Assembly (NCBI RefSeq): GCF_003918875.1
Contig: NW_025765275.1
Coordinates: 1 to 64,000, forward strand
DNA length: 64,000 bases
Origin: Haliotis rubra
Lineage: Eukaryota
Direction of reading: 5' to 3'
The position numbers were made by a program, and so were the translations under genes. Below are positions 13,901 to 63,422 of the stretch, one piece after another. The notes under the pieces were generated by a model. The model was not told where the DNA came from. It worked only from the letters and a program-made list of their open reading frames with translations, and searched no databases. Numbering within the stretch: the stretch's first letter is position 1; each line of letters opens with the position of its first letter.

Positions 13901-14732
13901 TATAAGTAAGGCACCTATTGTTCATATTTCGCAAAAGTCAGCTTTCCAGATTGATATGCAAATACGTCTCTTGTGAATTAAGAACATCCAAGAACATTAA
14001 GAGCTATCTACAGCACCAACTTCAAGGTAACGTGTTAACTGTTCTTATCAGTTATGTATGTTTCACGAGGTAAACAGGAAAATATAAAGGAAATATACAT
14101 TTGTATCATCTTCCGTAGAAATCTGTTTTTTGAACATGGGACTTAAATATATTCCGTTAAATTCCACCAAATTCCGTAGATGTTTGTTGGCGGTGGGCGG
14201 TGTTATCCACATGGGTGCAGTATGTGAAGTTCACATCTAGTGTCCCCGACAGCGATAATGGTCTCAGCTCCATCTTTCTGCTCACTGATTTCACCCAAGT
14301 GTTAAATGTCTAAGATCTGAATCACTCCCATCTTTCCTTCCACATCAGTCTGACAGGCCGTTATGTAACTGAAATACTGTTGTACGCTGCAGTAAACACT
14401 TACCCGCATTGACTATTTGTTGCAGAAATAGAGAAGTTCTCGTCCTGGGTGAATTGGAAAAGTGGGTACCAATGTCTCACAACAGGATCGTTAATGTCAC
14501 CGTCGGCGACGTCATCACTGTCCACGTCAAGGGTCAGGCGGGAGAGAGTGTTGAGATGTGGTTTGCCGATGATGTACGGTTCGGTGCTTTGAAAACTATT
14601 ATAGGGACAGACGGCCTGGGTAGTATCATATATGAAATAAAATCTCATCCTGTTAACAACTCTGACCTCAGAAGAGCTTCAACGGTTGCTGTTGTCATGG
14701 GTATCCTAGCAACAATGATGCTCATGATGTAA
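4949..14732 (+). CDS. Copy 1 (5'-partial) of a secreted, putatively GPI-anchored clan GH-D (GH36/raffinose-synthase-like) glycoside-hydrolase-like gene; exons 4-13 and 15-17 present, exon 14 absent
   Basis: Exons read by hand: 4949-5186, 6662-6761, 7532-7628, 8136-8231, 8696-8746, 9035-9119, 9642-9701, 10146-10322, 10676-10802, 11284-11392, (exon 14 missing), 12986-13150, 13772-13905, 14426-14732. Phases are compatible except across the missing exon. Motifs: LGYWTDEGSYYF, YVELDTWWF, FPNGI, WGLATYIQD, GPVGIGDQIG, GELEKWVPMS, and a hydrophobic C-terminal tail. Exons 1-3 are not in the window. Confidence 0.8.
5481..5825 (-). mobile_element. Full-length tRNA-derived SINE with 13-bp TSD, intron 4 of copy 1
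   Basis: TSD gtcttcaacagga at 5468-5480 and 5826-5838. The minus-strand head has A-box tggtgtagtgg and B-box ggttcgatcc. Confidence 0.88.
6992..7100 (-). mobile_element. Decayed short SINE in intron 5 (also at about 28157-28290 and 53474-53607)
   Basis: tttagcaatatttcggcaatat ... ggcttcacacattgtacccatgtggggaaccg. Confidence 0.65.
7351..7545. repeat. 30-bp tandem repeat running into exon 6, about 6 units in copy 1 (2 units in copy 2 at 28533-28592)
   Basis: Unit cctactgtttccatgtcaaggcgtcaacgt. Confidence 0.9.
11647..11770. repeat. 32-bp tandem repeat, about 4 units in copy 1 (1 unit in copy 2 at about 34303)
   Basis: Unit tcttggtgccttaggtttagtacctcccagtc. Confidence 0.9.
11770..12700. repeat. 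78-bp minisatellite, about 12 units with a garbled 3' part, intron 13 of copy 1
   Basis: Unit ctagtaggccatgtttatgacactctcatgtctgtagaagcctatttccatctagtgactctcatctcactctcacct; it produces the spurious 26-aa-repeat ORF 11775-12338. Confidence 0.95.
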
Positions 14733-21041: not shown

Positions 21042-21817
21042 TATCGGACCGCTATACTACACGTTGTGCAGCTGTACTTTGTCCTGTACGAGATGAAATA
21101 CGAGGTGACTAAGGTGGCAGATAACGCCTACATCGAAACAACATCGGTTCCCGCAACTAAATCATGGCTGGCTACTGGTCCGGTGCTGTACTACTCTGTG
21201 TGTGTTTTACCTGCTTCCCAATTACAGGTACGTTATGTCTGTCGTGTCACAGATAATATTATCAATATATTCCTACGTGTTCTGAAACAAGTCATGTTGA
21301 TTACTGTTATCTCAATCCCGTGAAATAGGGTCTAGAACTGTGGCCTATATGTTCACAGTGTCACCTGTGACAGATAATATGTGTTGAATATGATACTGAT
21401 TGTCAAAGAGACCCTGGAATGTCACAAAGAAATCATTAACTTGTAACAAATAAGAAGATCCACGTCAATACACATATCTTTACATGTAAACTAACGACGG
21501 AAGACTAGAGAATGATACTTATTTAACATTCGAGTTACCGTAAAACACCGTTGTGTCGAACTTATTACTGTCAGGAAATATAATTGTGGTCCCTTCGTAT
21601 GCTTTCTTTATTCATCATTTTCGGCTTAGTCAAATGTTGCAATACTCAAAGTATTTATGTTGGTCGCTTCAAATGTGCCGCCTTCGAGTGCTCGACTGAA
21701 ATTAGAAATATATTTCCAAACAGTGCCGCTACATGTGTTGGATTCAAAAGCTAGTTATAATATGAGGTTTTGGGGCTGGCGTATGCAAAGGTGAAATACC
21801 AGCGTCACCCAGATACA

Positions 21818-22800
21818 AGTGAGATGTAAGTGGGTTTATTGTTACACTGACGGCAAGACTGAGATGTAGGTGGGTTTATTGTTACACTGACGACAAGAGT
21901 GAGATGTAGGTGGGTTCATTGTTACACTGACGGCAAGACTGAGATGTAGATGGGTTTATTGTTACACTGACGGCAAGAGTGAGATGTAGGTGGGTATATT
22001 GTTACACTGACGGCAAGAGTGAGATGTAGGTGGGTTTATTGTTACACTGACGGCAAGAGTGAGATGTAAGTGGGTTTATTGTTACACTGACGGCAAGACT
22101 GAGATGTAGGTGGGTTTATTGTTACACTGACGACAAGAGTGAGATGTAGGTGGGTTTATTGTTACACTGACGGCAAGACTGAGATGTAGATGGGTTTATT
22201 GTTACACTGACGGCAAGAGTGAGATGTAGGTGGGTATATTGTTACACTGACGGCAAGAGTGAGATGTAGGTGGGTTTATTGTAACACTGAGGGTGAGAGT
22301 GAGATGTAGGTGGGTTTATTGTTACACTGACGGCAAGAGTGAGATGTAGGTGGGTTTATTGTTACACTGACGGCAAGAGTGAGATGTAGGTGGGTTTATT
22401 GTTACACTGACGGCAAGAGTGAGATGTAGGTGGGCTTATTGTTGCACTGACGGCAAGAGTGAGATGTAGCTGGGTTTATTGTAAGACTGACGGCAAGAGT
22501 GAGATGTAGGTGGCTTTATTGTTACACTGACGGCAAGAGTGAGATGTAGGTGGGTTTATTGTAACACTGAGGGTGACAGTGAGATGTAGGTGGGTTTATT
22601 GTTGCACTGACGGCAAGAGTGAGATGTAGGTGGCTTTATTGTTACACTGACGGTGAGAGTGAGATGCAGGTCGGTTTATTGTTACACTGACGGCAAGAGT
22701 GAGATGTAGGTGGGTTTATTGTTACACTGACGGTGAGAGTGAGATGTAGGTGGGTTTATTGTTACACTGACGGTGAGAGTGAGATGTAGGTGGGTTTATA
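21818..22800. repeat. 40-bp minisatellite, about 24 units, intron 1 of copy 2
   Basis: Unit gagtgagatgtaggtgggtttattgttacactgacggcaa, perfectly periodic, no spacers. Confidence 0.97.
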
Positions 22801-23819
22801 GTTTATTAATCGTAATTATCCAAGAGACATATTTCAGGGACAGGGACGTCCACATTTCTCCCTAACTAATAAAACGGAGGTTACTCGTGGAAGAGATCAG
22901 ACTAATCATTGGTTGACAATTCATCTTGTCGATTGTCTTTGACAGCGGTTGGTTTCAGCCATCTTGGATAACAGCGGTTATACTCTGGTTATACCAGGCT
23001 GTACATTTGTTCATGGTTTGTTTATCACTGACCCTTGTCAAGGCCGATTATGGCTTTGATCCCTCAGATCTTTTGTTTCTGTTTGCTTCTGATAATAGAA
23101 CTGTGTACAATATTTTCTTAGTTAATGACATCCGATCTCAGGAGCACAGCTCTGTGACACCTCGCGTCTTCCCTTGTTGTACTGTTGTAGTGCCTCCGGC
23201 TCTTCAGCGTGACGACCAAACACTTTAACTACTAGGCTACCCCACCGCCCTCTAAATTAGAACTCGGTCGCATATCCTGTTTGTAAAGATGATCTTCATA
23301 CAACTTCTGGTGTTGACTTGATGTGAGATGAGAGAGGCACAACCTTCCCACTTGTGTAGCGTCTTCTGGATTACTCTGCATCTGCTACGATTACAGGTAC
23401 ACTTGATTCCACAAACATCAACATGTAGTAACTTCCAAACCAGTGTTTACATTGTAACGCGTTCCTGACAGCTAGGTTTATCAGAAACGAAGTGCTAAAA
23501 CGTTTGGTTCCAACTCTACAGTGGGACTGTTTCAAGTAGGAACCACAATAGGTATATCTCCTACATCGGGTGTTTACTGTGTGTAACCTTTACCTTAACA
23601 TTTCATGATGTCCCGATGGTAAGGACTTCTTGCATCAACCAACGCACTTGCTCAGAGAGTCGTGATTTATTACAAAGCTAAATAACCTGCCTCCTTTTCA
23701 GATTGTGGTAAACATTTCCTACTTGTTTGGTTTATCCAGTGTTGATGATTACCGGGGCGATAGCATGAAGTTAGTCTGGCTCACAGTTATTTGTCCTTCC
23801 GTGAAGTCCTTTGTGTAAT

Positions 23820-23984
23820 GGGGCCGATAGCCCTTTGGTTAAAGCCTCCGCTAGTAACTCTGAAGACCCGGTTTCTATTCCCCACATGGATATACAATGT
23901 GTGAAGCCCATTTCTGGTGTGCCCCACTGTGATATTGCTGGAATATTGCTAAAAGCGGCGTAAAACCATACTCACTCACTCACC
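23820..23984 (+). mobile_element. Older copy of the short tRNA-derived SINE (intron 1, copy 2; duplicate at about 48525-48697)
   Basis: gaagacccggtttctattccccacatgg ... gatattgctggaatattgctaaaagcggcgtaaaacc followed by (ctca)n. Confidence 0.8.
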
Positions 23985-26071
23985 TACACGTGTAATGCAA
24001 ACGACACATATGAAGCAAGTGTAGATTTTACTGAGGTTCAGAATCTCCAATCTCACAGGGCATTTCAGTCTTAATGGAGAAGTTTTTGTTCTATCACAAA
24101 TACTTATTTTCAGGGACTGAGCGTCAAAGGAATATCTACCGAAACTTAAGAAACCTCAAACTTTGTAGTATTTAGAATCTGGTATGATGAAGAGGAATAA
24201 CATTAATGGTGCTTCATTTCGGTGTTAGCATTTTGTCTATCCATAGAATTTGTTCCTATTCAACTACCACAAACTACTGTCTGAGATACCCGGGTGCCCT
24301 TGGACAAATAATCTTAGCGCATGGTGGTCGTTTTCCCCATTCCTTAACAGAGACTTAGAGCAGTCGTAGGACTAATGTTGTTTGTACAGTGGCACTCGGT
24401 TCTATATAGTCCCACCCCAGAGTTAAACACTTACACGTGTATAACCGGATATGTTTCAGCCGATGCCGATGTCTTCAGTGTAGCTACCTTCCCAGACGGA
24501 CGTTACGAGATAAAGATCAATAATGTCACGTGGTTGAGCAGCGCCCCAACATTCTTCGTCATCAACGACACGCGCTTCTCCGCCGATGATGGCAGCCTCG
24601 TTCTCGACAGTATCAACACTACCATATCCGGTACAGGCCAGTTCGGGGTCGAGGTCTCCAAGAACTTCCATTACCGAGCTGGTGACGTTCCAGTCATCAC
24701 GAGTATCGTCATATACGGGACATCAATCATGTCATTCATAGTGGTAATGTACCTTTCAAACTTTTCAACGTGCAGAACGCAAAAAATAATCTTTATTGTA
24801 GATGGATGTAAATACATTTACATTGATGCTTCTCATTTCGTTTTACATTATTGTAATTATTGTTACGTTAGGGAACAGTCTTTACTTATAACATGTTCTT
24901 TCTACGATACACATCTAGCTGGAAATTTCGGCTGCGTTTGTAAATAGTTACGTTATCTGATTGTTTCGGACTTCCTCTGTTCCCGTCCACTTGCTTTGTT
25001 TTGTATAAGTTGTAAACAATATGTGTTTGGAGTTTCTGCAAGGAAGCACTTTAACAAACACGAGGATAATTTGGATATTCATGATGACTCTTTCATTTCA
25101 TTTTGATGAAGCGCTTCCCCGACGGAGCCTCAAACACAAATCAAAGCAACATAGACGGTGTTATCTGTGGTTACCCCGGATTCAAACTGGACACCACGTC
25201 CAAACTGGGATACATGTCGTTCGGGGGAGCTGACTTTCAACAGTCCGTCGGAAGGTAAGCTACTCGGTGAATACTAGGACAATTGCTATTTGCACTGCAA
25301 GTAACAATCCAAAACTTTGTTTTCTAAGTAAGGATTAGATATAACCTCTATATTTACAATGTAGAGCAACGATTCGGTGTAGATTCTAACACTGCTATAA
25401 AACAGGTGATGTACAGGGTGGTGTAGGGAAGCTAATATACAGATATGAAGTAGCGTTTTACAATGGAGCAGAGACGCCTGTTGAATACATAGGAGAGAAT
25501 CTGAGATACATTAGGTCCTTACAAATGAAACCAGTCGAATTACCACAGAAGGATTACCTCTGATTGAAGTCTTTGATGAGATGATGGTAAGCTGGGGTAT
25601 GTATCAGCCTTGGTCATGACTGATAGATAGTTGAAATCTTTAATATGGATGTCTTCTTGGAGATGTCTGAGTTTGAAGTGAGGGCTCTGATTTTGTCCTA
25701 CTGGATGCTGTGGTTTTAACGAATATGGTCAGATGGATCTGATTTCATGTCTTGTTTAGACACCGAGCAATGTTATGTTGATGCTTGTTATCGTATCCCA
25801 GCAACGTAGATAGATGCTCCAGGTGTCAATCACCCGATAGTCTTGTTGAGACTCGACTATGTACAGGCCACTGTAGCTGGTTTACTGCGTGTCCCGAGAC
25901 ATACGAAAACTGGATACGATCTATTCTCTTGTCTCTTACCTGACGGCACGTATTTGGCTTCTTGGGCTTACTGCATTGATACATTAACAGACTCAATGTC
26001 AACTAATGAAAAACAATATATGTCGGAATCTCAGTGTGTGAAATAATATCAAATGCTGGAATTACTTCCAT

Positions 26072-26216
26072 GGAGTGAGTGAGTTGCTTTGAGTAATATT
26101 CCAGCAATATTGGGACACCAAAAATGGGCGTCACACTGCACCCATGTGGGGAATCGAACCCAGGTCTTCGGCGTGACGGGCGAACGCTTTAAACACTAGG
26201 CTACCCCACCGCCCCA
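26072..26216 (-). mobile_element. Older copy of the short tRNA-derived SINE (intron 3; duplicate at about 50806-50948; interrupted in copy 1)
   Basis: gagtgagtgag ... ggggaatcgaacccaggtcttcggcgtgacg ... ctaccccaccgcccc. Confidence 0.8.
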
Positions 26217-29200
26217 CTCCCATGGAAGATCGTAAAGATGAGTAAGAACATACAGATCGAAAAATGTCTCTTCAAAGATTTGTGCAGTGTCGGGGTTACA
26301 GCACGACAGCTTTGAGATTGGTTTGTACCAGACCTTATTGGGATGTTTCTAATGTTCACCCTTCAGTCATAATTTCCCAAATGTCCTTTCTTCTTTTGCG
26401 GGAACACTTGACTTGCCTCCGACTGCCACCCGTGAGCATCTGATATGATCCTTATGACACAGTGGAATCGGTGATTTGTTATTACGAATATAGTTCCTGT
26501 CCCCAATCATATTGAGTACATTTCGTCACCTGAATAAGTTTATTTCTTATTTCAAGATCCAAAAAAAATGCAAATAAATTCCCATACATAATATCTCCCT
26601 GTTACTGGAATATTCTGGGCTGCCTGTGGTCATGCACGAACATATTACTGTATCTGACACTCACGAAACACTGACTTTTCTTCAGATGGGATCCGTCCGC
26701 ATCCATCCATGATGGTTTGGAAGGTTCCAGCCCCTTCTCAGTGTTTGACACAAGAGGAAATGCTGTGGCATTTGGACAACTGAATAATGTCATGACGACA
26801 CCAATGTGGCACGACAAAACCAACAACTTCCTGTACTATGGAATTATGGGAGGAATCGAACAGATCCCGACAAATTTCTCCTACCACATTTTGGCAGCAT
26901 ATTCCTCAGGGGGACCTGAAAGTGTAATTAGATATTCTATTTAGTGAACATCTCGTCGGCTCGTTTGAGGAATAAATGGTGTTTAAAGGGTTATTCATTC
27001 AGCGACTATATTTTGTCCATTTCTGAATTTCAAGTAGGTTCTAAGAAAAGGGAGTTTGGATCAAGTCGATAAACAAAATGGCTGCCGTACCTCGTTTTCA
27101 TCCAAATACTAAAGACACCAAGCGTAATCCTTGCCACATGCACGAGTAAAGCACACACAAGGTACAACCAGACATGTCGGTAGTCCTTGTGTCTTCAACA
27201 GGTATTGAAGGTTAATGTTGTTTATGAGTAAACAGAGTTTCAGTGTCGTTGGTCTGTAGGCATGTCGTTATTGTTGGTTTCGGTGCACACCGTGTCTTCG
27301 TCCTTACCAATAGGCACCGTGTTATTGACGCAGTTCTGTCGAACATATTAAAGACAACCATCTGCTCTGAATATCATCCTCTATATACATGGGAATATGT
27401 GTTAGTCTGTTACGATTAAGATCTACATTTTTAACTTATCCAAATGTGTTGGGATTTGAATGCTTCTATTTCTGAGATGAAATATTTCAATATACTTTCA
27501 TTGAAAACACAGAAAGGCATCCCTTCCATACCAAAAACAACCTCAACATATAAAACATCCATCTGGTAGGATAATCAGTTATGTTGTACATAGTTTCATC
27601 AGCGGACTATCATCGGGTTCTGCCAGGACAATATGCCTGTGTATAGCTCTGGAGTATAGCTCTGTGATACCGACTAAATATACATGTATACCCAGCACAC
27701 TTTGAAACTGTCGACAAACCAATATTCGTTAGCAGAAACTAAAACTCTCTCTCTCTTAATAGATTATTTTGTGTTCCTGACGTTAGATAATGTTTCCGTA
27801 CAACTTCTTCAAAGTGGTGATTTTATTTTCAACTTTTCAGAGTCTGTCTGTGTGGGGTTTCGTAATCAGGAGCTTTGTATAGAAGGAAGATAAACCGGCG
27901 GATCCCTCTGGGGACACACTGGGGTACTGGACAGATGAAGGTGACCTTAAACAATTTAATTAATGTCTACTTTAGGTCATTGCTGGTACAAGAATCCGTA
28001 TAGACGCGTCTCACCCACGAAATACAACAGTTGTTATCCATAAAGTATGTTAAATAGTGAGCTTGAGGTCTTGGCTTTGAATGTTTTGAGACAGTTTCAG
28101 GGCAGATTTTTGTTTCTCCACAAACGTGTCAGTTGTAATGTTTATTGTCTGAATAGAGTACGTGAGTATAGTTTTAGCAATATTTCGGCAATATCATGAG
28201 ATACAGGCTTCCCACATTGTATCCATGTTGGGAACCGAACCCGGGTCTTCAGTGTCACGAGCGGACGCTTTAACCTCCAGGCTACCTGTCTCAATAGAAG
28301 TCATCAAGCAATATCTAACGACTCAAAGGCACAAGATAATAGTATCACCAACATATGTCACATTGAAATCCCCTTGTGTACAATGATAACTTCCAGTCAC
28401 CTAAATCGAGGGTTTGAATCCCACTTGGTATTTGTCTAGGTTTGGTAGCACCATACAAATGTTCTTTTGTTTTCGAAGAGTGGTGAATGCCTCAGACCTG
28501 CATCCCTTCGGTGGGACCTTCTGCCTTCATGTGCCTACTGTTTCTATGTCAAGGCGTCAACGTCCTACTATTTCCATGTCAATGTTACAGGGTCCTACTA
28601 TTTCGATAAAACCGATGGAACATCAACGTATGAAGATACATTGATCAAAGTGTTTGCTGATGCCCGCAATAGAAGTATACAATACAGGTACCTGTATAGT
28701 TTTGGTACAATAGGACAACAATTGATAAGATGGCGTATTGCGTCGATGAGGCAATGTATTTATGATTAATTTACAGTATATATATCTTGATAACTGAAAC
28801 ATCTGGCCGATTGAGTCGCCTGAGGTGCAGATTTGTGTGACATTTATGTATTTCCGATGACTGAATATTTTAGACCAAAATCATGAAAAATGGTTCCAGT
28901 GCCGCGATATGTGATTAACGTGAACATATCCTGCAACGTAGCATGTTACCCATACGCTGTGATATATCTCTATTTGCACAACAGATAATTTTTATTCATT
29001 CATCTTTTGGTTCGGAACATATATCCTCATTCCTTTTTCTCCTCTTTCGATGCTTATCTTTCTTTTATTCCTAAATCTTCCGTATTCCTTGGTCACGTAT
29101 TCTGCAAATGATCTATTGTTATTCCTAATGCATGCACTCCTCGTATATACGCTTATTTCTGTTTCATATCTTCTGCAGGTATGTAGAACTGGACACCTGG

Positions 29201-31547
29201 TGGTTTACAAAAGGTCAAGGTGGAGGGGTCAAGGAGTGGACAGCACCAGCAGACATCTTCCCCAACGGCATCGAGTACGTCTACAGTAATCTAACATTAC
29301 TGGTGGTAAATCAGTTTCCCTATTGACACATTGATATTAATGGTAACACTGTACTACCAAATATTTTTAGTGTTCATCAATACATAGGTAGCCCGACTAA
29401 ACAACATTCTATACGATTTACAACTTTGTACAGATTGTGTTCGGTTTTGCACAAGTTCTGAAGGAGAAATTGAACGTAATGATAAATCCCAGCAACCCTC
29501 AACCCTTATGTAGCAAGTCATTCACACACGCACGCACGCACGCACGCGTGCGAAAAATAGAAAACAGAGTTTTTGGTGGAAGGGTAGTTGTCTTGACATA
29601 TCCCGCTTTAAGACCTGACCTGCCCATTGAGAATAAGATGATGACATGCATTGTTTTGTTGTGGACTAGTCGGACAACACCACCTTCAGAACGATCTGGG
29701 AAAACGGTAATACAGATATAATGAATGTTATGTTTGTTTTCAGGTATGTCCACAGGAGTTTGAACGTACCTATTGTGGCGAAAAATAATTTCTGGTGAGT
29801 TGTGAGAAGGGAGCTTCGCAGAATGAACTAAGTGAAAGCATTAACATACTTTAGTCTTTGACGGCTCAGTAGGGACATGATCGGGTTGTCTGTGTCTTAG
29901 TTGGGTGAGGGGCTCGGCCAGTTGTCCTGGAGGCAGTGACTTCGCTACACTTCCGAGGACATTGTTTCGTGGTCTGTTGTGAAAAGCACTACGATGTCCA
30001 GAAGGACATTAATTATGTTACGTTGATTCCGTGAAACTGTGGCACGTTCAAAAGAACTAATTTCAATATTTATTTATTGCAGGTCCAGTGATAACCTATA
30101 CGCAACACAAAATGGCGGACAGTTCAATTTTGAAATGGAAGGAGACATGGCAATACCGACAGATGAGGCATTTACAAATATTATTGATTTATACATATAG
30201 TTTACATTGAGTGTGGAACGGTTTATTTCATCAAAGTAACTGGTCTTGTTTCATAATAATATGATATATTTAGGTAATCATTTTTAATACTGAAATATGG
30301 AACCATGAAGATTTAGTATTTGAAATACGACAAGTGTATCATGATGTGTCCACAAACAATGTCACTTAAAGGAAGTGATCTACTGATCCACTCAATTTTT
30401 AACCACTCTGACCCTGACTTTAAACCAATCACCAGCGCCCTGTGGTGGTTGTAAGAGGCGACTAAAAAGATCCTTTGGTCAGGCTATGGTGTTTGGTAGA
30501 TGGCGTGTCATCATACTACGAAAGCGTGGAGTGACTGAGAGAGCTGGATTTTTACGCCGCGTTTTAAAGCTTGTCTCATGCTGAGTCTACCTCAACAAAC
30601 AATGCAACAATCTACCAATGAAGGAGCAGTGAAAATACTTTTCGATTCGGAACCATGTGACGTCAGTGAATGATTTGTATATTTCCAGGCGTTCTGGGAC
30701 AAAATCTTCAGTGATTCCAAGCAGTGGGGATTGGCCACATATATACAGGTAGGATTTGCCACCATGCGCTCTCGATTATATTCTGCACTGAATTATGCAT
30801 CGATATTTCTTCAAAAAGGCTTTCTTAGAACGTTAACGCTGATGACGTCACAAAACAATCAGACGTTTCAGTGTAATCGATATTCTAAAGAGGCGGTCGT
30901 GAATTGTTTTATGGTACATATTGAACAAACAGGGTATTAGCAGAATGTTAGTAGTAAGTGTATGTCCCGGTTCTTATTGTTATACACGTGAAATGAAAGT
31001 TCTGTACGGAACAATATATGCTGCATGCTTTATATTCGCGCAATTTCTAAACAATGATGACAAAAATCCTTCCTGACTGATACAGAAGTGCCCGAGGGTC
31101 TCAGTGATGTTGCAAATACTTTACAATACCGCTTATTGCGAAGTTTAATCTATGTGTATCAGTCAACAGAATATTGTCTCCTGCAGGACAACATGACGGA
31201 AATATTCCGTACTTTCCCACGGATGCAGACGGACCTTAACTTTGCGCGAGATTGGTTGGTTAAAATGGCGGCGTCTGCTTTGAAACACAACATCACCATC
31301 CAGTACAGTGGAGCCACCCCAACGATGGCGCTCTTGGCACTCCAGTTACCGGCTGTCACCCAGGTCAGAAACAGTCGTGGATGTTGATGTCGGTACATTT
31401 AGCATATTCACAGTGGCATAATACGCTTACTGTGCATCCACTTTAGGACAAATTATGCATCCAGTCATAAGAAAGGTATGGTCCAGTCTGATGTTTCCCC
31501 CGATACAATCCTCTGTATGAAGATCTAACAACTCGCAACAGGATATA

Positions 31548-33125
31548 TACTACCGACAATAAGTATGGGAACACCCAAAGATCAAAGTATAACAAAGAAA
31601 ATTTAAAGTGGCAGGGTCGGTTTATTACAAGGGTACAGAAAACATTATTTGTTCTTAAAATGTAATGGATTTATGGGCAGATATCATTGACTGCAATGCC
31701 AGTACAAGCAGCGGAAGAGGATAGGGGTCAAAACGGAAAGTCACAGTATCAATAGTGGGTGTGTCCTCCACGTTGATTGATGCATTCTGTACATCTGCGC
31801 CTCATGGACCTGACAAGGGTCGGAGGGTAGCTTGGGGAATCAACTGCCATTCAATCTGGAGCCACTGTACAAGAACCTGAAGAGTCGGTGCCATTCCATG
31901 ATTGTCTCTAGCACGTCTTTCAAGAATGTCCCATAGATGTTCAATTGGAGCCAGATCCGGTGAATAAGCTGGCCACTGCATCACATTCACATTACTTTGT
32001 CACAAGAAGTCTCTAACGACTCGAGCTCGATGTGGTCTGCATTGTCATCTTGCAGCTGTGCTCCGGCACCAATGGTGTTCAAAGCTGGAAGAACCAGAGG
32101 ACGCAGAATCTCATCCCGGTACCTCAATCCAGTCAAATTGCCCTGTACATGGTACAGAGGAGTACGGTGATGTAAGCTGAAGCCTCCCCAAACCATCACA
32201 GAGACACCACCAAATCTGTTCCTCTCCCTCACAGTAGCATCGTGGTAACGTTCTCCACGCCTCCTGAAAACCCTAATCCTTCCATCGTTGTGCTCAAGAC
32301 AGAATCGTGACTCGTCAGTGAAGAGTACCCCGGATCACTGTTGCTGATTCCATCTCAAATGTGCTCTGGCCCAGGCCAGTCTTGCAGCTCTATGATGTGG
32401 GCGGCGATGAGGACGTACCGCTGGACGACGTGACCGTACATTAGCAGCTCTGAGACGGTTCCTGATGGTTGAGATGCTGACGTTTGTGTTGGTTGCATGT
32501 CTGAGCTGCAGCCGTATAGCACTGGCAGTTGTGAAGCGGTTCCTAAGGGCGTGGAGTACGACATATCGATCGTCTGCCCTTGTCGTTTTTCGTGGCCTTC
32601 CTGACCGAGCTCTGTCTTGTACTCGGCCGGTGGTTTGGAACCGTTCCCTCAGCCTATGAATGACGGAAGGGGACACCTGAAGACGACGACCAACGCTTCT
32701 TAAGGAGCAAGGCAATGGCCCTGCTTCTGTTGTTGTCGTTTAATGGTCTAAGCTTAGGCATATTGGGGTAATTGTGAGGCTTCAACACTGTCTGCAGCTT
32801 CTTCTAAGGAAAAGTTGCCACAACATGCATGGGAAGTCTGTCTTTCACGTGCACGAGGTTGCTGTGTTTGGGCGTTTGAATCAGACACAGTGCAGGTTTG
32901 TTTTGACACCTTCGTTTTTTGCTGTTTTGGACACATTTTAATTTCATCAAAACTTCACAAATATTGAAGCAATTGCTTCAACTGTTTTTTTAACATGTCT
33001 TTAAAGTGTCCACTAAGCACATGTCACAGATACATTTCACTTTTATGAATTAATGAAGCCACCGCTGTCAGGTTTGTGCATGGCGATCAAATTTGAGGGT
33101 GTTCCCATACTTTTTGTTTGTAGTA
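31548..33125 (-). mobile_element. Tc1/mariner DNA transposon (Tc1-type), full length 1578 bp, inactive; in intron 11 of copy 2 only
   Basis: 29-bp TIRs (tactaccgacaataagtatgggaacaccc vs the reverse complement of gggtgttcccatactttttgtttgtagta, 26/29 identical). TA duplication at 31546-31547 and 33126-33127. Empty site caggatatattttgt in copy 3 (about 57107-57120). Confidence 0.95.
31749..32761 (-). pseudogene. Disrupted Tc1-type DDE transposase
   Basis: HTH region (RSGRPRKTT), then VLFTDESRF, VMVWGG, LQDDNA, WPAYSPDLAPIEHLW and a C-terminal GGHTHY. It has an in-frame TGA near 32335 and several frameshifts. Confidence 0.92.
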
Positions 33126-34599
33126 TATTTTGTCATATGCCATGACGTATGAAACGACAGTGAAACATCGACATATATATAGTTGGGCTATAATAGTTAC
33201 ATTCGGAATGCGGCGTTGTACTTCGTTTCGAGTTACACAAATCAGATTTGCTGCTCCGAATGCTTCTCACTCGCACCGAGAATTTACATTAGATATTAAT
33301 ACCTTTATCCAGGTGCGCGTCCTGGGAGGCTATGGCACAGAGTTGGACCAGAGGAATATTCTTGCTTCGTCCGTATTCTCCTCACTTTTAGATGTGTTGG
33401 TCTTCAAAGGTGTGGTCCGTACACAAAACCAGAAGGGAGGTGGGAACATTTCTTATGGTTGCTATTGTGGTTAATGTTAGTTTACATTTTTGTTGTTGTT
33501 GATATAACCATTCCCGTTGTTGTTATCGGCAGCGGCCATTAAGCCTAGTGGTATTGACGGCACGTCTAAACCAGGTGAACCAGCATGAATGTAGACAACT
33601 GTGTAAAATCTCTCTCCTTCAACTCCCTAATCAGCTCCGACAACGGTGACATAGGTCTTTGATCGCTGCCTGACGACCCCGAGACATTTGATAGCAAATC
33701 ATTTTATTGAAACTTTTGAATAGGATTTGGACCGCAATATACATTTTGATGTTCGAAATTCGTTAAAAAACGGCGACATGATAATTGACTCAGCTCAGGT
33801 ACAGCGAAGATTATTTTGACATCTTAAAATTGTTCCAACCTGTGAATGTGTAAGGCATGCATTGCCTATATGGCTGAAATGTGGACTAGTACAGAGTTTA
33901 GCAATACTTTCTTTCAAGGCACTGGATCAATCTCTGCAGCCCAGAGCAGCGTGATAGCTGTCCTGTCGCGGGGTCCTGTGGGGATTGGTGACCAGATCGG
34001 ACATACCAATACTTCCATCATCAATCGGTAGTCACCTTTTCATCTATCCCCTCCCATCAATGATAATAATTATACACAAATGGCCTGAAAACTGAAACAG
34101 GGGGCTTTCTGTTTCCCATCTGTTTTGCATTAAGATGTAAATGTATGTGAATTCAACGAGACTGAATTTAATTCTTCTCCGTGTATGTCAATAAATTTTC
34201 TTTACCTTTTGACATAAACGTGAACCAGGAAAACACATATATAAAGCAATATCCGAAACATACGAAATGTCCCCAGAACCAAGTTGTCCAACTGCTCATT
34301 GTTCTTGGTGCCTTGGGTTTAGTACCTCCCAGTCTCTTGGCTGTCGTTGGTATAGTGTCCGAGTTTGATGCCAGGAGCACAACCCTTCTCACTCTCTAGG
34401 TAATGTAGAAGGTTGCAATGTTGGGCAGTCTGCAAATTCTCGGAAACGTATTTGATGGGTTCGACTAAGCAGCGCTTCCTGGTCCGTATTCGATTATTTA
34501 CAGACAGCTGTCATATCGCTGGAGTATTGCTGAGTACGGCGTTGAACAACAGCCAAACCAATCGACATCAAACCTGTATTAGTCTACACTCATTCCCTT

Positions 34600-35335
34600 C
34601 TCAGCTCTAGTGGCACTCAGCCCGCTCTCACTTCTAGTAGCCTATATGCACAACACTCTCTATAGTAGGCTGTACTCATTCCCTTCTCAGCTCTGGTGAC
34701 TCTCATCCAACTCTAACCTCTAGTAGGCCATGTTTATGACACTCTCATCTCTGTAGAAGCCTATTCCCATCTAGTGACTCTCATCCAACTCTAACCTCTA
34801 GTAGGCCATGTTTATGACACTCTCATCTCTGTAGAAGCCTATTCCCATCTAGTGACTCTCAGCCCACTCTCACCTCTAGTAGGCCATGTTTATGACACTC
34901 TCATCTCTGTAGAAGCCTATTCCCATCTAGTGACTCTCAGCCTACTCTCACCTCTAGTAGGCCATGTTTATGACACTCTCATCTCTGTAGAAGCCTATTC
35001 CCATCTAGTGACTCTCAGCCCACTCTAACCTCTAGTAGGCCATGTTTATGACACTCTCATCTCTGTAGAAGCCTATTCCCATCTAGTGACTCTCAGCCCA
35101 CTCTCACCTCTAGTAGGCCATGTTTATGACACTCTCATCTCTGTAGAAGCCTATTCCCATCTAGTGACTCTCATCCAACTCTAACCTCTAGTAGGCCATG
35201 TTTATGACACTCTCATGTCTGTAGAAGCCTATTCCCATCTAGTGACTCTCAGCCCACTCTCACCTCTAGTAGGCCATGTTTATGACACTCTCATATCTGT
35301 AGTAGCCTATTCCCATCTAGTGACTCTCATCCCAT
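34600..35335. repeat. 78-bp minisatellite, about 8-9 units, intron 13 of copy 2 (only about 1.5 units at 58660-58785 in copy 3)
   Basis: Same unit with copy-specific variants (atctctgtag, attccc, cagccc/catccaac). Confidence 0.95.
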
Positions 35336-38249
35336 CCTCAGCTCAAGTACTGTCGATGACAAACATATAGATATCTGGCAATTTTGCTCTCAGGATATGT
35401 AGCTCTGATGGAACTATCCTCAAACCAAACAGCCCTGCACTCGAAATAAATGCTCAGGTTGTGCAGGTGAGTAAGCTGTGAGCGACCCCAACTCCGCTTT
35501 TTGAACAGTTTGTATGTAATGTCACGAACTGACAAAATAATCGATACCTCTCAATTGTTTTACCATGCGTATGGTTTTTAATTGCAAATATCTTAAGTTT
35601 ATTATCTTAAGCGATATTATTTCCAAAACCTAGATTGTGCTAACGTGTGGTTAGTTCTCAGAGAATACCTCACCATGGTACTTTCGTGTTAAATTTAATT
35701 TCATTTAAGACTTGATCTATCAAAGAAAGACTGTTTTTTGTTTAGCTCGTGGTGCAAAATGTATGCGAGTGTAAATCTATGACACATATCATTGACGTGT
35801 AACCATGCAAATGACACCATCAGTGGATCTGTCCATGATTAAGGAACAAAAAGCTTCACCAATCTGTTGAGAGACTTACTTGCTAAGGGTACAACTCACA
35901 GGTCTCTACGATTCAACTCTGTTAACTTTAACATCAGTTGCTATGTTTTAAAGATCACATGGTCATATCAGTAGCACATAATGTACCCGTTGAAGTGAAG
36001 AGCGCTTGTCTTGTCTGCAGGTTCAGTCAAAGGTGATGACGTTTCAACACGTGTTTATCAAAATATGCTGCTGCCTGTATAAGAAAGTAAAATTGCAAGT
36101 GCCGTCCACTATGTTCCAGATGACGTTTCAAGATGGCAGCGGCCCAGACGGCGACATTTGGGCGACACTCAACGGCCTGTATAGGGGTGGACCAAACCCG
36201 GAACAGGTGTACGGGATTATCTATGTTTCCGGCTTGAACAGGACGTTTGACATCACCCCGACGGCAGCCGACATTGGGTTTGAAGTGAGTATGTCGTACG
36301 TATTTAAAGGGACATTCGGCGCGAAGAAAGCGCAAGTCCCAGCCAATATGATTCAAGTAGTTGAAACATCACGTACGTCGTCAGTGATGTATCATACCTG
36401 TAAAGAATGCGTTAAGTTACGAATGTGAGACGACTTGCACTTTAGATTATGCATGTTGTATGTGCATATTGGTCTATCAAGCAAATAAGTCCCTACCCAA
36501 AACGATACTTAAAATGGCACGTGGCAGTTCTTCAATACTTCAAACATAAGCTGGAAATTGTGTGTTTCCAATGCTTGCTCTTCACATGGATAAATATCAG
36601 TCGGGTATGAGTTACCTCTGTTAAGTAATCGATACTTGGTACCTAATCCTCATCAATGAGATCGGGTAACAACACGTTGAACGTATTTCAGGTACATGTA
36701 CATAGAGAGCTTAGGATAACTTTGTGACTGAAGCGTTGGTTTGTTACGTTCACCTTCTGTGGTGTGCCATGGGTCCTGGAATGAAGGAAAATCACCGAAG
36801 CAACAATTAATGTCGGTACATCAGAAAATGGTACTTCCAATGCCTCCATCTTCCGGCTTCAGCACCTACACATATTTACTGTTGCAGTACCCAGTGAGCA
36901 AGATCTTCTCTGCAGCTGATCCAACAAAGCAGTACGACTTCAGCGACAGCAAACCCTTCACCATCCCGCCATGCCAACTGGAATTCTGCATGTACTATAC
37001 GTCACCAGTTATAAAATACAAGTAAGGCACCTATTATTCATATTTCGCAAAACTCAGCTTTCCAGATTGATATGCAAATACGTCTCTTGTGAATTAAGAA
37101 CATCCAAGAACACTAAGAGCTATCTGCAGCACCAACTTCAAGGCCACTTCTTCACTGTACTTATCAGTTATGTATGTTTTACGAGGTAAACAGGAAAATA
37201 TAAAGGAAATAAACAGTTGTATCATCTTCCGTAGGAATCTGTTTTTTTAACATGGGACTGAAATATATTCCGTTAAATTCCGTCGAATTCCGTAGATGTT
37301 TCTTGGCGGTGGGCGGTGTCGTTATCCACATTGGTGCAGTATGTGAAGTTCACATCTAGTGTCCCCGACTAGGATATTGCTGGAATAATGTCAGCATTAA
37401 TCATCCGTGTTTGTTTTGTTTAAAATGCTACATCACACACATTTTGAATATGTCACATACAAGATATTTGACATGCCTCCCAAATTTGCTTTCCGCCAAG
37501 TATTGAATCTTGACCTTCATCTAAGTTTATGTCAGAATATGGGATTGAGAAAAATGTGCCATGTTGGGGGATAAAACTGGAGATAAAGCCCATGACCAGC
37601 TGATCCTGTTACGGATAAGGGACATAACTGTATCATCTTATGCACCTTGGTTCTTCCAACGTCCTATGCTACAAATCCTTAAACCTTAGTGCAGTTTCCC
37701 GTGTACACGTTCGGGTGTTTCTTGAGGCTTTTAGGTATGCTTCAATACACGTATGTGTGAGTAATTTCCGTTACCATACTCTCCTGTACGTCTCCGGGAG
37801 TATATTGTTTCGAACCAGGTTTTGCTTTAGTGGCTCACATTTACACAAAATCGAATATTTTACCATTGATCTCTATAGAAACGTTGTATTTGTTGCTAAC
37901 ATTATCAAAGCCCGCTATTACATGTACACGTATGCATATTCTAACCTTAAAGAAACAAACCAGTTCCTTTTCCGAGTACAGGAAGCTAAACAGACCACAG
38001 TCCCGCACAAAATGTCGCCCGCTAGAAAATATATGTGGTCACATTCTACATACGTCGTGATGTAAACAAAGACAAGACCACATATTGGAACATATAGTCA
38101 GTTTTAGTTACTGGATGGATGTAGATACAATACACAGACATCTTACTAAAAATCATCCAATCACGGCTGTCCAATGATGTTAATGTGGCTTTCCCATCCT
38201 TTCGAGGTATCCATTCACAGCTGGGTGGACTGCGACACATAGTCACAGT

Positions 38250-38530
38250 ACTTTGTCCAAGTTTTACTGCACGTTGCTGTACCCGCAACTAGGTGTTTGC
38301 ACGTATTCATGTGACCACCATCTGGTCATATACTAACGGATTCGTAGGTTCTTTTAAGTGCACAGGGTTGTGTACTGTACACTAGCTAGGGTTTGTGACA
38401 ACACTGAAAGAGTCTGCACACAAAGTTGACTCCTTGGCGGTTTTTACACCAGGTCACAGATGGGATCGATCACGGCAACTTAAACTCGCTGGATCACGAG
38501 CCTGGCGTCTTAGACAGCTCGCCCACTACA
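38250..38530 (-). mobile_element. Probable old SINE of another family in intron 16 of copy 2
   Basis: gaaagagtctgcacacaaagttgactc core, plus a tRNA-like head on the minus strand (cgagctgtctaagacgccaggctcgtgatccag ... tcgatccc). Family not assigned. Confidence 0.4.
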
Positions 38531-40013
38531 CCCCTATACGGGGTCCTCAAAGGGTCAACTCACCCACTCTCATGTTCCTTAAGTTTTCGGTAAGAACATT
38601 CCCCAGTCATCAATCGCACCTCAATTCCCGGTACACAATAAGGCGTGGAAAACATATGCTGAAGTAGACACAGGTGGTACCATGTTTGCATTGTGTTGGG
38701 TTTTTTTTCAGCTCCATCTTTCTGCTCACTGATTTCACCCAAGTGTTATATAAATGTCTAAGATCTGAATATCTTCCATCTTTCCTTCCACATCAGTCTG
38801 ACAGGCCATTATGTAACTGAAATACTGTTGTAAGCTGCAGTAAACACTTACCCGCATTGACTATTTGTTGCAGAAATAGAGAAGTTCTCGTCCTGGGTGA
38901 ACTGGAAAAGTGGGTACCAATGTCTCGCAACAGGATCGTCAATGTCACCGTCGGCGACGTCATCACTGTCTACGTCAAGGGTCAGGCGGGAGAGAGTGTT
39001 GAGATGTGGTTTGCCGATGATGTACGGTTCGGTGCTTTGAAAACTATTATAGGGGCAGACGGCCTGGGTAGTATCATATATGAAATAAAATCTCATCCTG
39101 TTAACAACTCTGACCTCAGAAGAGCTTCAACAATTGCTTTTGTCATGGGTATCCTAGCAACAATGATGCTCATGATGTAAGACGAAAGTGACTGCATTGT
39201 TGCTGGTTGGTGGACACAAGGCCAAAACTCCATCTCATCTCATTGGGTAAATTCTGTATTAATAAGCAGTTACATTTTCATGGTGTACTCATTTTACCTT
39301 TAAAACGTGACAGAGATATCCGTACTGTTCGATTGGGTGTTTTGTTCTTTTAAAGCTTGGTGCGGATTTGAACTGAACCATTCTGTCCTTCCAAAGTCGG
39401 CAGGAAAACAGTATTTCTCTTTACCACAAACTCAGCTATCGTTCATACAGGTCCTGACACAACTGAAGAGTATCAGGCATTCTGCAATACATTTACCATT
39501 CTAGATTTCTTCAGTTGTTACATTATGAAAATAAATATATTATAACCTAACATATCTTTTCAAGAAATGTTAGCCTGTGAATGATGCACAAGATGAAACC
39601 TGCCTTGGTACTTACGTTTCGTATAAATATCGGAATCTGTGACCACAAAAAACATCTCCCAGAACAAACTGTGCAATTGTCAATGATCACCTGTATCACA
39701 TATGAAATAAGCTCCATGCAAAATGGATAATGCCAAGGAACACGTATGGTGGGAAATGTTCCTAGAAAACTGTTCTATGGGACTAATTCCCCGAGAAGAT
39801 GTTTACAAAGGAACAATACCGCTAAGGGAACAGATACTCTTTGTCACTGTCACTTTGAATTGGTGTGTAAGTGTTCTCTCCTGTGCATTAATTGTTTGGC
39901 CTGTCGAAAATCAGAATGTTTTGTCACACACACATAACTATAACACCTTTGTTCACTTGGCTTGTTTTGTTTGGAAGAATGTATCAGAATGTATGGTGTT
40001 TGCTATGTACCTT

Positions 40014-45407: not shown

Positions 45408-46747
45408 TGGCTATTGAATATACGTTTGTCACCAGAAATCTGGTACTGTAAGTAAGCTGGGTTCCGTCTCGCACATCGCAAGTTGGCGCCGTCAAAGGGC
45501 CCCGGGAACCAGCTAAATACCGGAAGCAGCGCCTCGCGAGACTTACAGGCCCTATTTCACGTTTTGGCATGACCGAGTAGAGTAGGATATATCTTCTAAT
45601 TTACTAACTTCTGTTTATGAGTTGTGAGAAACCTTATATTTTCCTTATGATCCGCAGGAGAACACCAACCAACATGTCCACAAAACGTCGCATTACCTCA
45701 CAAAATATTCTGTTCCACCACACACATTCCACATTTTCAATACACCAGCCCCCTTAGCCAATCTTTATCAACACCACTGAAACTATGACGGTTTGATAAG
45801 GGCTGCTTTTGGTTATGGGTCACGTGATTATCGGGCCGCTATACTACACGTTGTGCAGCTGTACTTTGTCCTGTACGAGATGAAATACGAGGTGACTAAG
45901 GTGGCAGATAACGCCTACATCGAAACAACATCGGTTCCCGCAACTAAATCATGGCTGGCTACTGGTCGGTGCTGTACTACTCTGTGTGTGTTTCACCTGC
46001 TTCCCAATTACAGGTACGTTATGTCTGTCGTGTCACAGATAATATTATCAATATATTCCTACGTGTTCGGAAACAAGTCATGTTGACTACTGTTATCTCA
46101 ATCCCGTGAAATAGGGTCTAGAACTGTGGCCCTATATGTTCACAGTGTCACCTGTGACAGATAATATGTGTTGAATATGATACTGATTGTCAAAGAGACC
46201 CTGGAATGTCACAAAGAAATCATTAACTTGTAACAAATAAGAAGATCCACGTCAATACACATATCTTTACATGTAAACTAACGACGGAAGACTAGAGAAT
46301 GATACTTATTTAACATTCGAGTTACCGTAAAACACCGTTGTGTCGAACGTATGACTGTCAGGAAATATAATTGTGGTCCCTTCGTATGCTTTCTTTATTC
46401 ATCATTTTCGGCTTAGTCAAATGTTGCAATACTCAAAGTATTTATGTTGGTCGCTTCAAATGTGCCGCCTTCGAGTGCTCGACTGAAATTAGAAATATAT
46501 TTCCAAAAGTGCCGCTACATGTGTTGCATTCAAAAGTTAGTTATAATATGAAGTTTGGGGGCTGGCGTATGCAAGGTGAAATACCAGCGTCACCCAGATA
46601 CAATCTCTGCCTTCGCTTCGATTTCGCAAGTCAATACGTGCCATATCAGCGGGTGTATTTCCCGTTTGACCCAGTGTCATGGTGACATCCGTGTTTGCCT
46701 AGGACACTGCCACTCCTTATCTCAGCAACATTTTCGAACAGGATCAG

Positions 46748-47402
46748 TGGCTTTATTGTTACACTGACGGTGAGAGTGAGATGTAGGTGGGTTTATTGTT
46801 ACACTGACGGTGAGAGTGAGATGTAGGTGGGTTTATTGTTACACTGACGGTGAGAGTGAGATGTAGATGGGTTTATTGTTACACTGACGGTGAGAGTGAG
46901 ATGTAGGTGGGTTTATTGTTACACTGACGGTGAGAGTGAGATGTAGATGGGTTTATTGTTACACTGACGGCAAGAGTGAGATTTAGGCGGGTTTATTGTT
47001 ACACTGACGGCAAGACTGAGATGTAGGTGGGTTTATTGTTACACACTGAAGGCAAGACTGAGATGTAGGTGGGTTTATTGTTACACTGACGGCAAAGAGT
47101 GAGATGTAGGTGGGTTTATTGTTACACTGACGGCAAGAGTGAGATGTAGGTGGGTTTATTGTTACACTGACGGCAAGACTGAGATGCAGGTGGGTTTATT
47201 GTTACACTGACGGCAAGAGTGAGATGTAGGTGGGTTTATTGTTACACTTACGGCAAGAGTGAGATGTAGGTGGGTTTTATTGTTACACTGACGGTGAGAG
47301 TGAGATGTAGGTGGGTTTATTGTTACACTGACGGCAAGAGTAGAGATGTAGATGGGTTTATTGTTACACTGACGGCAAGAGTGAGATGTAGATGGGTTTA
47401 TA
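46748..47402. repeat. 40-bp minisatellite, about 16 units, intron 1 of copy 3
   Basis: Same unit as 21818-22800. Confidence 0.97.
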
Positions 47403-50400: not shown

Positions 50401-51956
50401 GAGTTTGAAGTGAGGGCTCTGATTTTGTCGTACTGGATGCTGTGGTTTTAACGAATATGGTCAGATAGATCTGATTTCATGTCTTGTTTAGACACCGAGC
50501 AATGTTATGTTGATGCTTGTTATCGTATCCCAGCAACGTTGATAGATGCTCCAGGTGTCAATCACCCGATAGTCTTGTTGAGACTCGACTATGTACAGGC
50601 CACTGTAGCTGGTTTTACTGCGTGTCCCGAGACATACGAAAACTGGATACGATCTATTCTCTTGTCTCTTACCTGACGGCACGTATTTGGCTTCTTGGGC
50701 TTACTGCATTGATACATTAACAGACTCAATGTCAACTAATGAAAAACAATATATGTCGGAATCTCAGTGTGTGAAATAATATCAAATGCTCGAATTACTT
50801 CCATGGAGTGAGTGAGTTGCTTTGAGTAATATTCCAGTAATATTGGGACACCAAAATGGGCGTCACACACTGCACCCATGTGGGGAATCACTCCCAGGTC
50901 TTCGGCGTGACGGGCGAACGCTTTAAACACTAGCTACCCCACCACCCACTCCCATGGAAGATCGTAAAGATGAGTAAGAACATATAGATCGAAAAATGTC
51001 TTTTCAAAGATTTTTGTAGTGTCGGGGGTTACAGCACGACAGCTTTGAGATTGGTTTGTACTAGACCTTATTGGGATGTTCCTAATGTTCACCCTTCAGT
51101 CATAATTTCCCAAATGTCCTTTCTTCTTTTGCGGGAACACTTGACTTGACTTGCCTCCGACTGCCACCCGTGAGCATCTGATATGATCCTTATGACACAG
51201 TGGAATCGGTGATTTGGTATTACGAAGATATGTTCCTGTCCCCAATCATATTGAGGTACATTTCGTCACCCGAATTAGTTTATTTCTTATTTCAAGACCC
51301 CAAAAACTGCAATTAAATTCCCATACATAATATCTCCCTGTTACTGGAATATTCTGGTCTGCCTGTGGTCATGCACGAACATATTACTGTATCTGACACT
51401 CACGAAACACTGACTTTTCTTCAGGTGGGATCCGTCTGCATCCATCCATGATGGTTTGGAAGGTTCCAGCCCCTTCTCAGTGTTTGACTCGAGTGGAAAT
51501 GCTGTGGCATTTGGACAACTGAATAATGTCATGACGACACCAATGTGGCACGACAAAACCAACAACTTCCTGTACTATGGAATTATGGGAGGAATCGAAC
51601 AGATCCCGACAAATTTCTCCTACCACATTTTGGCAGCATATTCCTCGGCGGGACCTGAAAGTGTAAGTAGATATTCTACTTAGTGAACATCTCGTCGGCT
51701 CGTTTGAGGAATAAATGCTGTTTAAAGGGTTATTCATTCAGCGACTATATTTTGTCCATTTCTGAATTTCAAGTAGGTTCTAAGGAAAGGGTGTTTGAAT
51801 CAAGTCGATAAACAAAATGGCTGCCGTACCTCGTTTTCATCCAAATACTAAAGACACGAAGCGTAACCCTTGCCACATGCACGCGTAGGTCACACACAAG
51901 GCACAACCAGACATAAGAGTCCACACACGTCGGTAGTCCTTGTGTCTTCAACAGGA

Positions 51957-63420: not shown

Positions 63421-63422
63421 GT

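Follow-up and report, generated by a model that had tools for sequence, protein, structure and literature searches.

A tandemly duplicated abalone gene encoding a candidate membrane-tethered, GH36-like pseudo-glycosidase

Can a glycoside hydrolase (GH) fold that lacks one of its two catalytic carboxylates still be of use to the animal that encodes it? This question is raised by a 64,000-nucleotide stretch of the genome of the abalone Haliotis rubra (contig NW_025765275.1, positions 1 to 64,000 of the forward strand; hereafter ‘the window’). Self-comparison of the window reveals a unit of ~24.4 kb that is present three times, and these copies (A, B and C) are 88-97% identical at the nucleotide level even when introns are counted in. 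Copy B carries the most complete gene in the window, and its product is the main subject of our analysis. We consider the chances somewhat better than even that this gene family member specifies a membrane-tethered, probably glycosylphosphatidylinositol (GPI)-anchored, glycosylated GH36-like protein that is devoid of general-acid catalysis and binds glycans at the cell surface.

The relatives of this gene are numerous and almost entirely nameless. A HMMER search of a representative set of 1.84 billion proteins, for which the query was the 102-amino-acid (aa) translation of window positions 24423-24728 (exon 2 plus 37 nucleotides upstream of its acceptor), identified a 767-aa protein (P0001; expectation value (E) 3e-36) along with several relatives of ~770 aa. 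They are annotated as ‘uncharacterized protein’, and the species concerned are Haliotis rufescens, H. asinina, H. rubra and H. cracherodii. Full-length orthologues exist for H. rufescens (P0001) and H. asinina (P0060, 770 aa), and for H. rubra RefSeq has no more than a partial model of 523 aa (P0061). When a canonical family member (P0011, which keeps both catalytic motifs discussed below) was used in a word-based search, at least 1695 proteins were retrieved, all unnamed, which come from molluscs, annelids, amphioxus, hemichordates, tunicates, echinoderms and protists. Database names in the family are limited to ‘uncharacterized’ or the automatic label ‘Alpha-galactosidase’, and a precomputed match to PF05691 accompanies just one member (P0153) among the at least 1695. 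Full-length members produce only sub-threshold Pfam hits (Raffinose_syn, Melibiase_2 and GH97). Specifically, P0011 scores 13.2 bits against PF05691, for which the gathering cut-off is 20, and P0060 and P0001 yield no match to this family. Translations of single exons gave no match in a Pfam scan, and only noise when used in phmmer searches of the PDB and in Atlas searches.

The fold can be assigned from a predicted structure. A 64-sequence alignment of the family was used to generate an AlphaFold model of the H. asinina orthologue P0060, whose sequence is 86% identical to that of copy B, and this model has a predicted local distance difference test score (pLDDT) of 88.8 and a predicted template modelling score (pTM) of 0.86. 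The best Foldseek match is the Arabidopsis alkaline alpha-galactosidase AtAkalphaGal3 (7EXF, E 3e-23). Superposition on 7EXG/7EXF by VIA-align (Z 25.8) covers 596 residues with a root-mean-square deviation of 3.5 Å, extending from residue 25 to 740 of the model and from residue 5 to 749 of the chain, and GH27 and GH36 alpha-galactosidases follow with Z of 20-22. The match to 7EXF is end to end and includes three domains: an N-terminal beta-sandwich, a (beta/alpha)8 barrel and a C-terminal beta-sandwich. Among named Atlas clusters, the closest are Sip1/Raffinose_syn and Melibiase. Thus, the modelled fold is that of clan GH-D, with its closest likeness to the raffinose-synthase/alkaline alpha-galactosidase branch of GH36. 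An earlier inspection of the window (the sequence-only reading) had proposed both clan GH-D and a likeness to raffinose synthase/Sip1 proteins from a few short motifs, and the structural comparison bears out this proposal. The galactosaminidase of F. plautii is also among the top structural matches.

Placement within this branch permits the catalytic positions to be located by reference to a characterized enzyme. In AtAkalphaGal3 the nucleophile is D383 of a KVD motif and the acid/base is D447 of an RASDD motif, and replacement of either by alanine yields an inactive protein (PMC9912918). A profile of the family matches 7EXF with E values of 7e-4 to 9e-4 and places aRvsddY on IRASDDF (residues 442-448), QYCM on ACMS, GPVGPSD..N on GPLYVSDSPGKHN, and DGLILKP on DGSILRA. 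At the column equivalent to D447, the 64 sampled sequences carry Asp in 58 cases, Asn in three, Gly in two and Glu in one. Copy B reads R467-V-L-G-G471-Y in this segment and therefore has Gly at the acid/base position, which constitutes the loss of an essential catalytic residue by which pseudoenzymes are recognized. The sequence-only reading had called the protein catalytically altered because RVLGGY stands in copies A, B and C, and the near-universal presence of Asp elsewhere in the family supports this view. Four copies outside this contig carry the same six residues, which are hence found in seven of seven genomic copies.

The nucleophile position was predicted by that same reading to survive, and conservation in the family is in line with this. 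The column of the presumed nucleophile (within YEQDW) has Asp in 63 of the 64 sequences, and copy B retains it as D407. In the P0060 model this residue comes directly after the barrel strand formed by residues 401-406, at the C-terminal end of the strand. A barrel-only profile was built to reach the nucleophile of 7EXF, and its alignment still began only at the QYCM motif.

Acid/base loss is accompanied by many other changes. We compiled 122 columns for which conservation among 55 canonical members reaches 90% or more. Copy B departs from the consensus at 37 of these (~30%), with 29 departures in the barrel, whereas the median for canonical members is 3. Among the altered positions are E405I and W408N, which flank the nucleophile, as well as C447S, M448G, R452T, S469L, D471G, W479R, D498G and W501R. 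The changed columns are located mostly around the catalytic face of the barrel. Copy B nevertheless keeps D314 (Asp in 62 of 64 at this column), D407, R467 and D532, the last within GIGD where the family consensus is GPVGxxD. The Lys of the K-x-D nucleophile motif is represented by Ile in copy B and by Glu in canonical members. That is, canonical Y-E-Q-D-W sequences have Glu where the substrate-binding Lys of GH27/GH36 K-x-D motifs sits, and this hints that canonical members act on a substrate other than plain alpha-galactosides.

Could the protein still be an enzyme despite these changes? A carboxylate might have migrated to E475 or D477 (both within ‘GTELD’ at the start of helix 6, after the acid/base segment), the leaving group of the substrate might be a good one, or the catalyst might come from outside or be carried by the substrate itself. 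Myrosinase, a member of GH1, works without its acid/base Glu and offers a precedent. Continued activity would fit the retention of D407, R467, D314 and D532, the conservation of D477 across the tail-bearing clade, the existence of intact orthologues in two species, and ratios of nonsynonymous to synonymous substitution rates (dN/dS) that are below 1. However, E475 is Gly in H. rufescens, and D477 also occurs in P0004, a relative from Patella in which the canonical Asp is preserved, and so neither residue looks like a specific replacement. The breadth of change among active-site columns also resembles erosion of the site rather than a single swap. We therefore regard a working enzyme as unlikely, and the same judgment extends to a variant in which the protein would act as a transglycosylase by trapping a glycosyl-enzyme intermediate.

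The ends of the protein indicate where a non-hydrolytic product would reside. By inspection, residues 1-21 of copy B begin with a short polar segment that leads into a hydrophobic core (GAVLLCVCFTCF), after which PITA is followed by DAD, and this signal-peptide-like N-terminus would direct the protein to secretion. The predicted protein has 12 N-X-S/T sequons, in keeping with the dozen or so estimated previously. At its C-terminus, N745-N746-S747 is followed by the spacer DLRRAS and then by a hydrophobic stretch of 16 residues with which the protein ends, precisely the arrangement without a cytosolic part that the sequence-only reading had described. The orthologues P0060 and P0001 keep the same layout. 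In the P0060 model, residues 744-757 have low confidence and residues 756-769 form a helix. With copy B added to the 64 sampled sequences, 11 of the 65 in the alignment have a hydrophobic C-terminal tail, and seven of these come from an eight-member gastropod clade whose remaining member, P0004, narrowly misses the cutoff. Canonical members mostly end in Cys and have no such tail.

A separate matter, which is independent of the catalytic status of the protein, is whether the tail is a cleaved GPI signal or a conventional tail anchor or single-pass transmembrane helix. The helical prediction for the 16-residue segment of the orthologue would suit a transmembrane helix. However, 16 residues are short for a stable one, the hydrophobic stretch ends the protein and leaves no cytosolic residues, and a short polar spacer separates it from a cluster of small residues (N-N-S) whose distance suits an omega site. 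Moreover, the layout recurs in the orthologues despite drift of the sequence. A transmembrane tail thus appears rather improbable.

The order in which these features were acquired can be read from a maximum-likelihood tree from which the motif columns were excluded and which was evaluated by Shimodaira-Hasegawa-like approximate likelihood ratio test (SH-aLRT) support. Copy B groups with P0060 and P0001 (support 100). This group falls inside a five-member clade exclusive to Haliotis (support 100) from which the acid/base Asp is absent throughout, with Gly in the copy B branch and Asn in its sister branch. This clade is nested in the eight-member gastropod clade (support 100), which includes sequences from Haliotis, Patella and Lottia. 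Because the Asp-less Haliotis clade lies inside a tailed gastropod clade, and because most canonical members are tail-less, the tree indicates that the hydrophobic tail arose first and that the acid/base residue was lost second. This loss is older than the divergence of H. rufescens, H. asinina and H. rubra. A gastropod subclade would thus have gained a GPI-like tail, and a Haliotis-only clade within it would then have replaced the acid/base Asp with Asn or Gly.

These events took place in a family that, judging from exon matches, is strongly expanded in abalone. The N-terminal exon has at least 40 matches across the H. rubra genome (contigs C2492, C550, C721, C191, C429, C535 and C115), more than 20 of which lie in one array on C2492. 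RefSeq models P0071-P0080 show that these loci are canonical paralogues that keep the Asp.

Taken together, these findings suggest how a pseudo-glycosidase of this kind might operate. A secreted, N-glycosylated, three-domain protein of ~770 aa would sit on the outer face of the membrane, where its -1 pocket may still bind a glycan. General-acid-assisted hydrolysis would not be completed, and the protein would act as a non-hydrolytic glycan-binding surface protein. We also entertain a broader proposal, which is possible but doubtful, in which invertebrates and protists possess a previously unrecognized animal GH36-like branch, with an E-x-D nucleophile motif instead of K-x-D, that expanded massively in abalone, and in which a GPI-anchored glycan receptor of Haliotis, devoid of the acid/base residue, would be the first natural pseudo-glycosidase of clan GH-D.

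Several observations weigh against assigning a tethered, glycan-binding pseudo-glycosidase to this locus. No family member has a known activity, and therefore the loss of activity is judged against an assumed ancestral glycosidase. D407 is the presumed nucleophile on the basis of its near-invariance and its position after the strand, in a segment that is unaligned to 7EXF, and E475 or D477 could conceivably provide an alternative acid/base. The tail, as judged by inspection only, probably represents a GPI signal. Additional difficulties arise from the gene itself. Codon 257 of copy B (positions 27880-27882) is TAG, and is TAC in the six other genomic copies and a Tyr codon in the orthologues. 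Consequently, the frame of 769 codons identified by the sequence-only reading is correct in length and exon structure but is not open, and the locus may produce no full-length protein. A search of the H. rubra genome assembly (1.378 Gb in 2855 contigs) located seven copies of the gene, of which none is intact as assembled. Finally, no sign of expression was found, as two possible RNA runs cover only an intronic Tc1 element and short repeats and include no exons, although these runs are small contig sets in which the absence of exons is no evidence of silence.

Public DNA runs were examined over positions 27700-33600 to evaluate the premature stop codon. Each run has a single contig at the TAG site, with a depth of ~153 versus ~20 nearby. 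This collapsed paralogue contig reads C at position 27882 and shows none of the five private variants of copy B between 27756 and 27882. Because contigs drop minority variants, the G of copy B at 27882 is neither confirmed nor refuted by these runs.

The seven genomic copies are distributed among three contigs, with three on the contig that contains the window (C385) and two each on C1264 and C2489. The tandem unit is indeed present three times in the window, as had been claimed, but its copies are not equivalent. The 5′ limit of copy A is a breakpoint in intron 3, such that exons 1-3 are gone and unique sequence lies upstream, and exon 14 is deleted. In copy C, exon 1 has a 1-base-pair (bp) deletion and exon 3 is frameshifted and has lost its acceptor (GG). 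Exon 17 of copy C is located 3.7 kb beyond the end of the window, at ~67655-67979 of the contig. A stop codon upstream in the open reading frame (ORF) of copy C exon 2 was considered as a further lesion and rejected, since it sits before the true acceptor. Copy 1 on C1264 carries a 2-bp insertion in exon 17 and is the source of the partial RefSeq model P0061. Several frameshifts each are present in copy 2 on C1264 and copy 2 on C2489. Copy 1 on C2489 is open in exons 2-17, but the 11 kb that precede its remaining 3′ portion of intron 1 (~13 kb upstream of exon 2) contain neither exon 1 nor a promoter.

Such a record invites the explanation that the whole H. rubra sub-array consists of pseudogenes without present function, and that the missing Asp simply reflects relaxed constraint. 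This would account for the defects in seven of seven assembled copies, for the RefSeq entry being only a partial model, and for the lack of exonic RNA contigs. Other evidence weighs against decay as the cause of the loss, which predates the separation of three species, two of which (H. rufescens and H. asinina) maintain full-length ORFs that are 77-86% identical to copy B. Pairwise dN/dS values over the seven H. rubra copies range from 0.18 to 0.61 rather than being near 1, and all splice sites of copy B are intact. In addition, copy C and copy 2 on C2489 (~11500-34200) differ by a synonymous rate (dS) of only 0.007 and have a large last-intron insertion in common, yet their indels are different. 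These differing indels point to long-read errors rather than real lesions, and suggest that haplotig duplication and residual, uncorrected long-read indel errors are likely contributors in this region of the assembly. Selection after the loss therefore presents a mixed picture, in which intact orthologues and low dN/dS ratios are set against copies that are all defective as assembled in H. rubra. We consider wholesale decay to be rather unlikely. Given the TAG codon of copy B and the truncated or frameshifted copies A and C, it remains that the array may be partly or wholly non-functional in the sequenced individual, and the locus may be decaying in H. rubra.

The exons of copy B (Table 1) were identified by tblastn with H. 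rufescens P0001 and then refined junction by junction against H. asinina P0060. They sum to 2310 nucleotides, or 769 codons plus TAA, and the translation is 77% identical to P0001. Every acceptor is AG, and the donors are GT in fifteen cases and GC in one, the GC donor being common to all copies. The exon junctions agree with those of P0061. Also confirmed by this gene model are the motifs ELDTWWF, GPVGIGDQIGHTN and DGTILKP that were originally recognized in copy B, and the division of YIQ and D between exons 10 and 11.

Table 1. Positions of the gene copies, copy B exons and intronic repeats in the window.
Feature	Position	Strand	Description
Copy A	4450..14732	+	exons 4-13 and 15-17 only; remaining exons in frame; RVLGGY present
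Copy B	21164..39180	+	17 exons, 769 codons plus stop; TAG at codon 257
Copy B exon 1	21164..21227	+	ATG and signal-peptide-like hydrophobic N-terminus; helix at residues 2-18 of P0060 model
Copy B exon 2	24460..24743	+	N-terminal beta-sandwich; acceptor at 24460 fits orthologues
Copy B exon 3	25112..25254	+	in-frame 3-nucleotide deletion relative to other copies
Copy B exon 4	26686..26923	+	from junction refinement
Copy B exon 5	27841..27940	+	holds premature stop
Copy B exon 6	28591..28687	+	from junction refinement
Copy B exon 7	29179..29274	+	ELDTWWF; D314 at 29192-29194; LDDGW-type motif, barrel strand 2
Copy B exon 8	29744..29794	+	from junction refinement
Copy B exon 9	30083..30167	+	GC donor
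Copy B exon 10	30689..30748	+	last residues ATYIQ
Copy B exon 11	31187..31363	+	first codon D407 (31187-31189), presumed nucleophile
Tc1/mariner remnant	31545..33124	-	intron 11 of copy B only (not in A or C); PF01498 HTH_Tnp_Tc3_2, E 2.6e-15
Copy B exon 12	33313..33439	+	VRVLGGYGTELD; R467 at 33316-33318; G471 at 33328-33330, acid/base position
Copy B exon 13	33919..34027	+	GPVGIGDQIGHTN; aligned to GPLYVSDSPGKHN of 7EXF
Copy B exon 14	35394..35466	+	DGTILKP; aligned to DGSILRA of 7EXF
Copy B exon 15	36120..36284	+	C-terminal beta-sandwich
Copy B exon 16	36888..37021	+	from junction refinement
Copy B exon 17	38874..39180	+	stop; N745-N746-S747 at 39103-39111; tail T754-M769 at 39130-39177
Copy C	45951..64000 and on past window end	+	exons 1-16 inside window; RVLGGY present
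Minisatellite, 40-bp units	21818-22803; 46747-47405		intronic
Minisatellite, 30-bp units	7351-7492; 53852-54079		intronic; gives P0061 its spurious N-terminus
Minisatellite, 78-bp units	11800-12674; 34692-35334		intronic
Minisatellite, 32-bp units	11646-11771; 58218-58401		intronic

Other features of the window lie outside the coding exons. Positions 1-4450 are unique, are richer in A and T (GC fraction 0.34-0.35) and have no counterpart beside the other copies, and the array begins at this boundary. The spacer between copies A and B contains an ORF of 261 aa (19174-19959, + strand) that has no Pfam match, and its duplicate in the spacer between copies B and C (43969-44753) is broken into two. 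The intronic minisatellites are common to the copies and differ in repeat number. An empty version of the Tc1/mariner site (joint from 31544 to 33125) is also seen in the DNA contigs.

If the proposed pseudo-glycosidase is real, then clan GH-D would join GH18, GH1 and GH13 as a fold recruited by animals for a non-catalytic role at the cell surface. The abalone paralogues, in which the acid/base residue passes from Asp to Asn to Gly and the protein from soluble to tail-anchored, would represent a natural stepwise series leading from a retaining glycosidase to a binding protein. Furthermore, ~1700 invertebrate proteins are flagged here as having a clear GH36-like active site, which is relevant to the processing of algal alpha-glycosides by grazers and filter feeders. 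For annotation, the H. rubra region, with its haplotigs, long-read indels and nonsense codon, needs accurate resequencing before its members are called genes or pseudogenes.

Among known systems, the closest counterpart is AtAkalphaGal3 and the raffinose synthase/Sip1 proteins (7EXF-7EXJ, PF05691). The abalone protein has the same three-domain fold, the profile aligns the R-x-S-x-D, GPxxxxD...N and DG.IL+P motifs, and the presumed nucleophile Asp would likewise lie at the end of barrel strand 4. However, sequence identity is only 11-12% and Pfam scores do not reach the gathering threshold. Where the plant enzyme has the Lys of KVD, the canonical invertebrate family has Glu and copy B has Ile, and in copy B the acid/base Asp is replaced by Gly. 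The plant alkaline alpha-galactosidase is a cytosolic enzyme, whereas the abalone protein is predicted to be extracellular, glycosylated and membrane-tethered.

The GH27 and GH36 alpha-galactosidases and alpha-N-acetylgalactosaminidases (rice 1UAS, human GLA, Thermotoga maritima GalA and F. plautii GalNase) superpose on the model through both the barrel and the C-terminal sandwich (Z 19-22). These enzymes use a retaining mechanism that relies on the two Asp residues of the KxD and RxxxD motifs (PMC9912918). The abalone protein shares no significant sequence similarity with them and lacks the acid/base residue. A nearer comparison is with the canonical paralogues (H. rufescens LOC124128193, P0011; H. 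rubra LOC124270048, P0066), which resemble it in length, exon-level homology and domain order, and which are 37% identical in sequence. Unlike copy B, these paralogues keep YEQDW and R-x-S-x-D-Y (R-[AV]-S-x-D-Y), have no hydrophobic tail and are soluble. They also occupy far larger arrays in the H. rubra genome than does the gene represented by copies A, B and C.

Pseudo-glycosidases have been described in other clans, including the GH18 chi-lectins, the GH1 domains of alpha-Klotho, and the GH13-like proteins 4F2hc and rBAT. To our knowledge, no pseudoenzyme of clan GH-D or family GH36 has been described, and a limited search of the literature on GH36/raffinose synthase proteins in molluscs and on GH36 pseudoenzymes likewise returned nothing on this family and no such pseudoenzyme. 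The known examples have different folds and belong to different clans. The GH28 pseudoenzymes of beetles are reported to have arisen inside an expanded family of digestive glycoside hydrolases (PMC6549527). What the abalone gene has in common with other pseudo-glycosidases is the loss of a catalytic residue after duplication in an expanded GH family, with the fold retained and selection perhaps maintained. For the known pseudo-glycosidases, roles in binding or scaffolding have been proposed.

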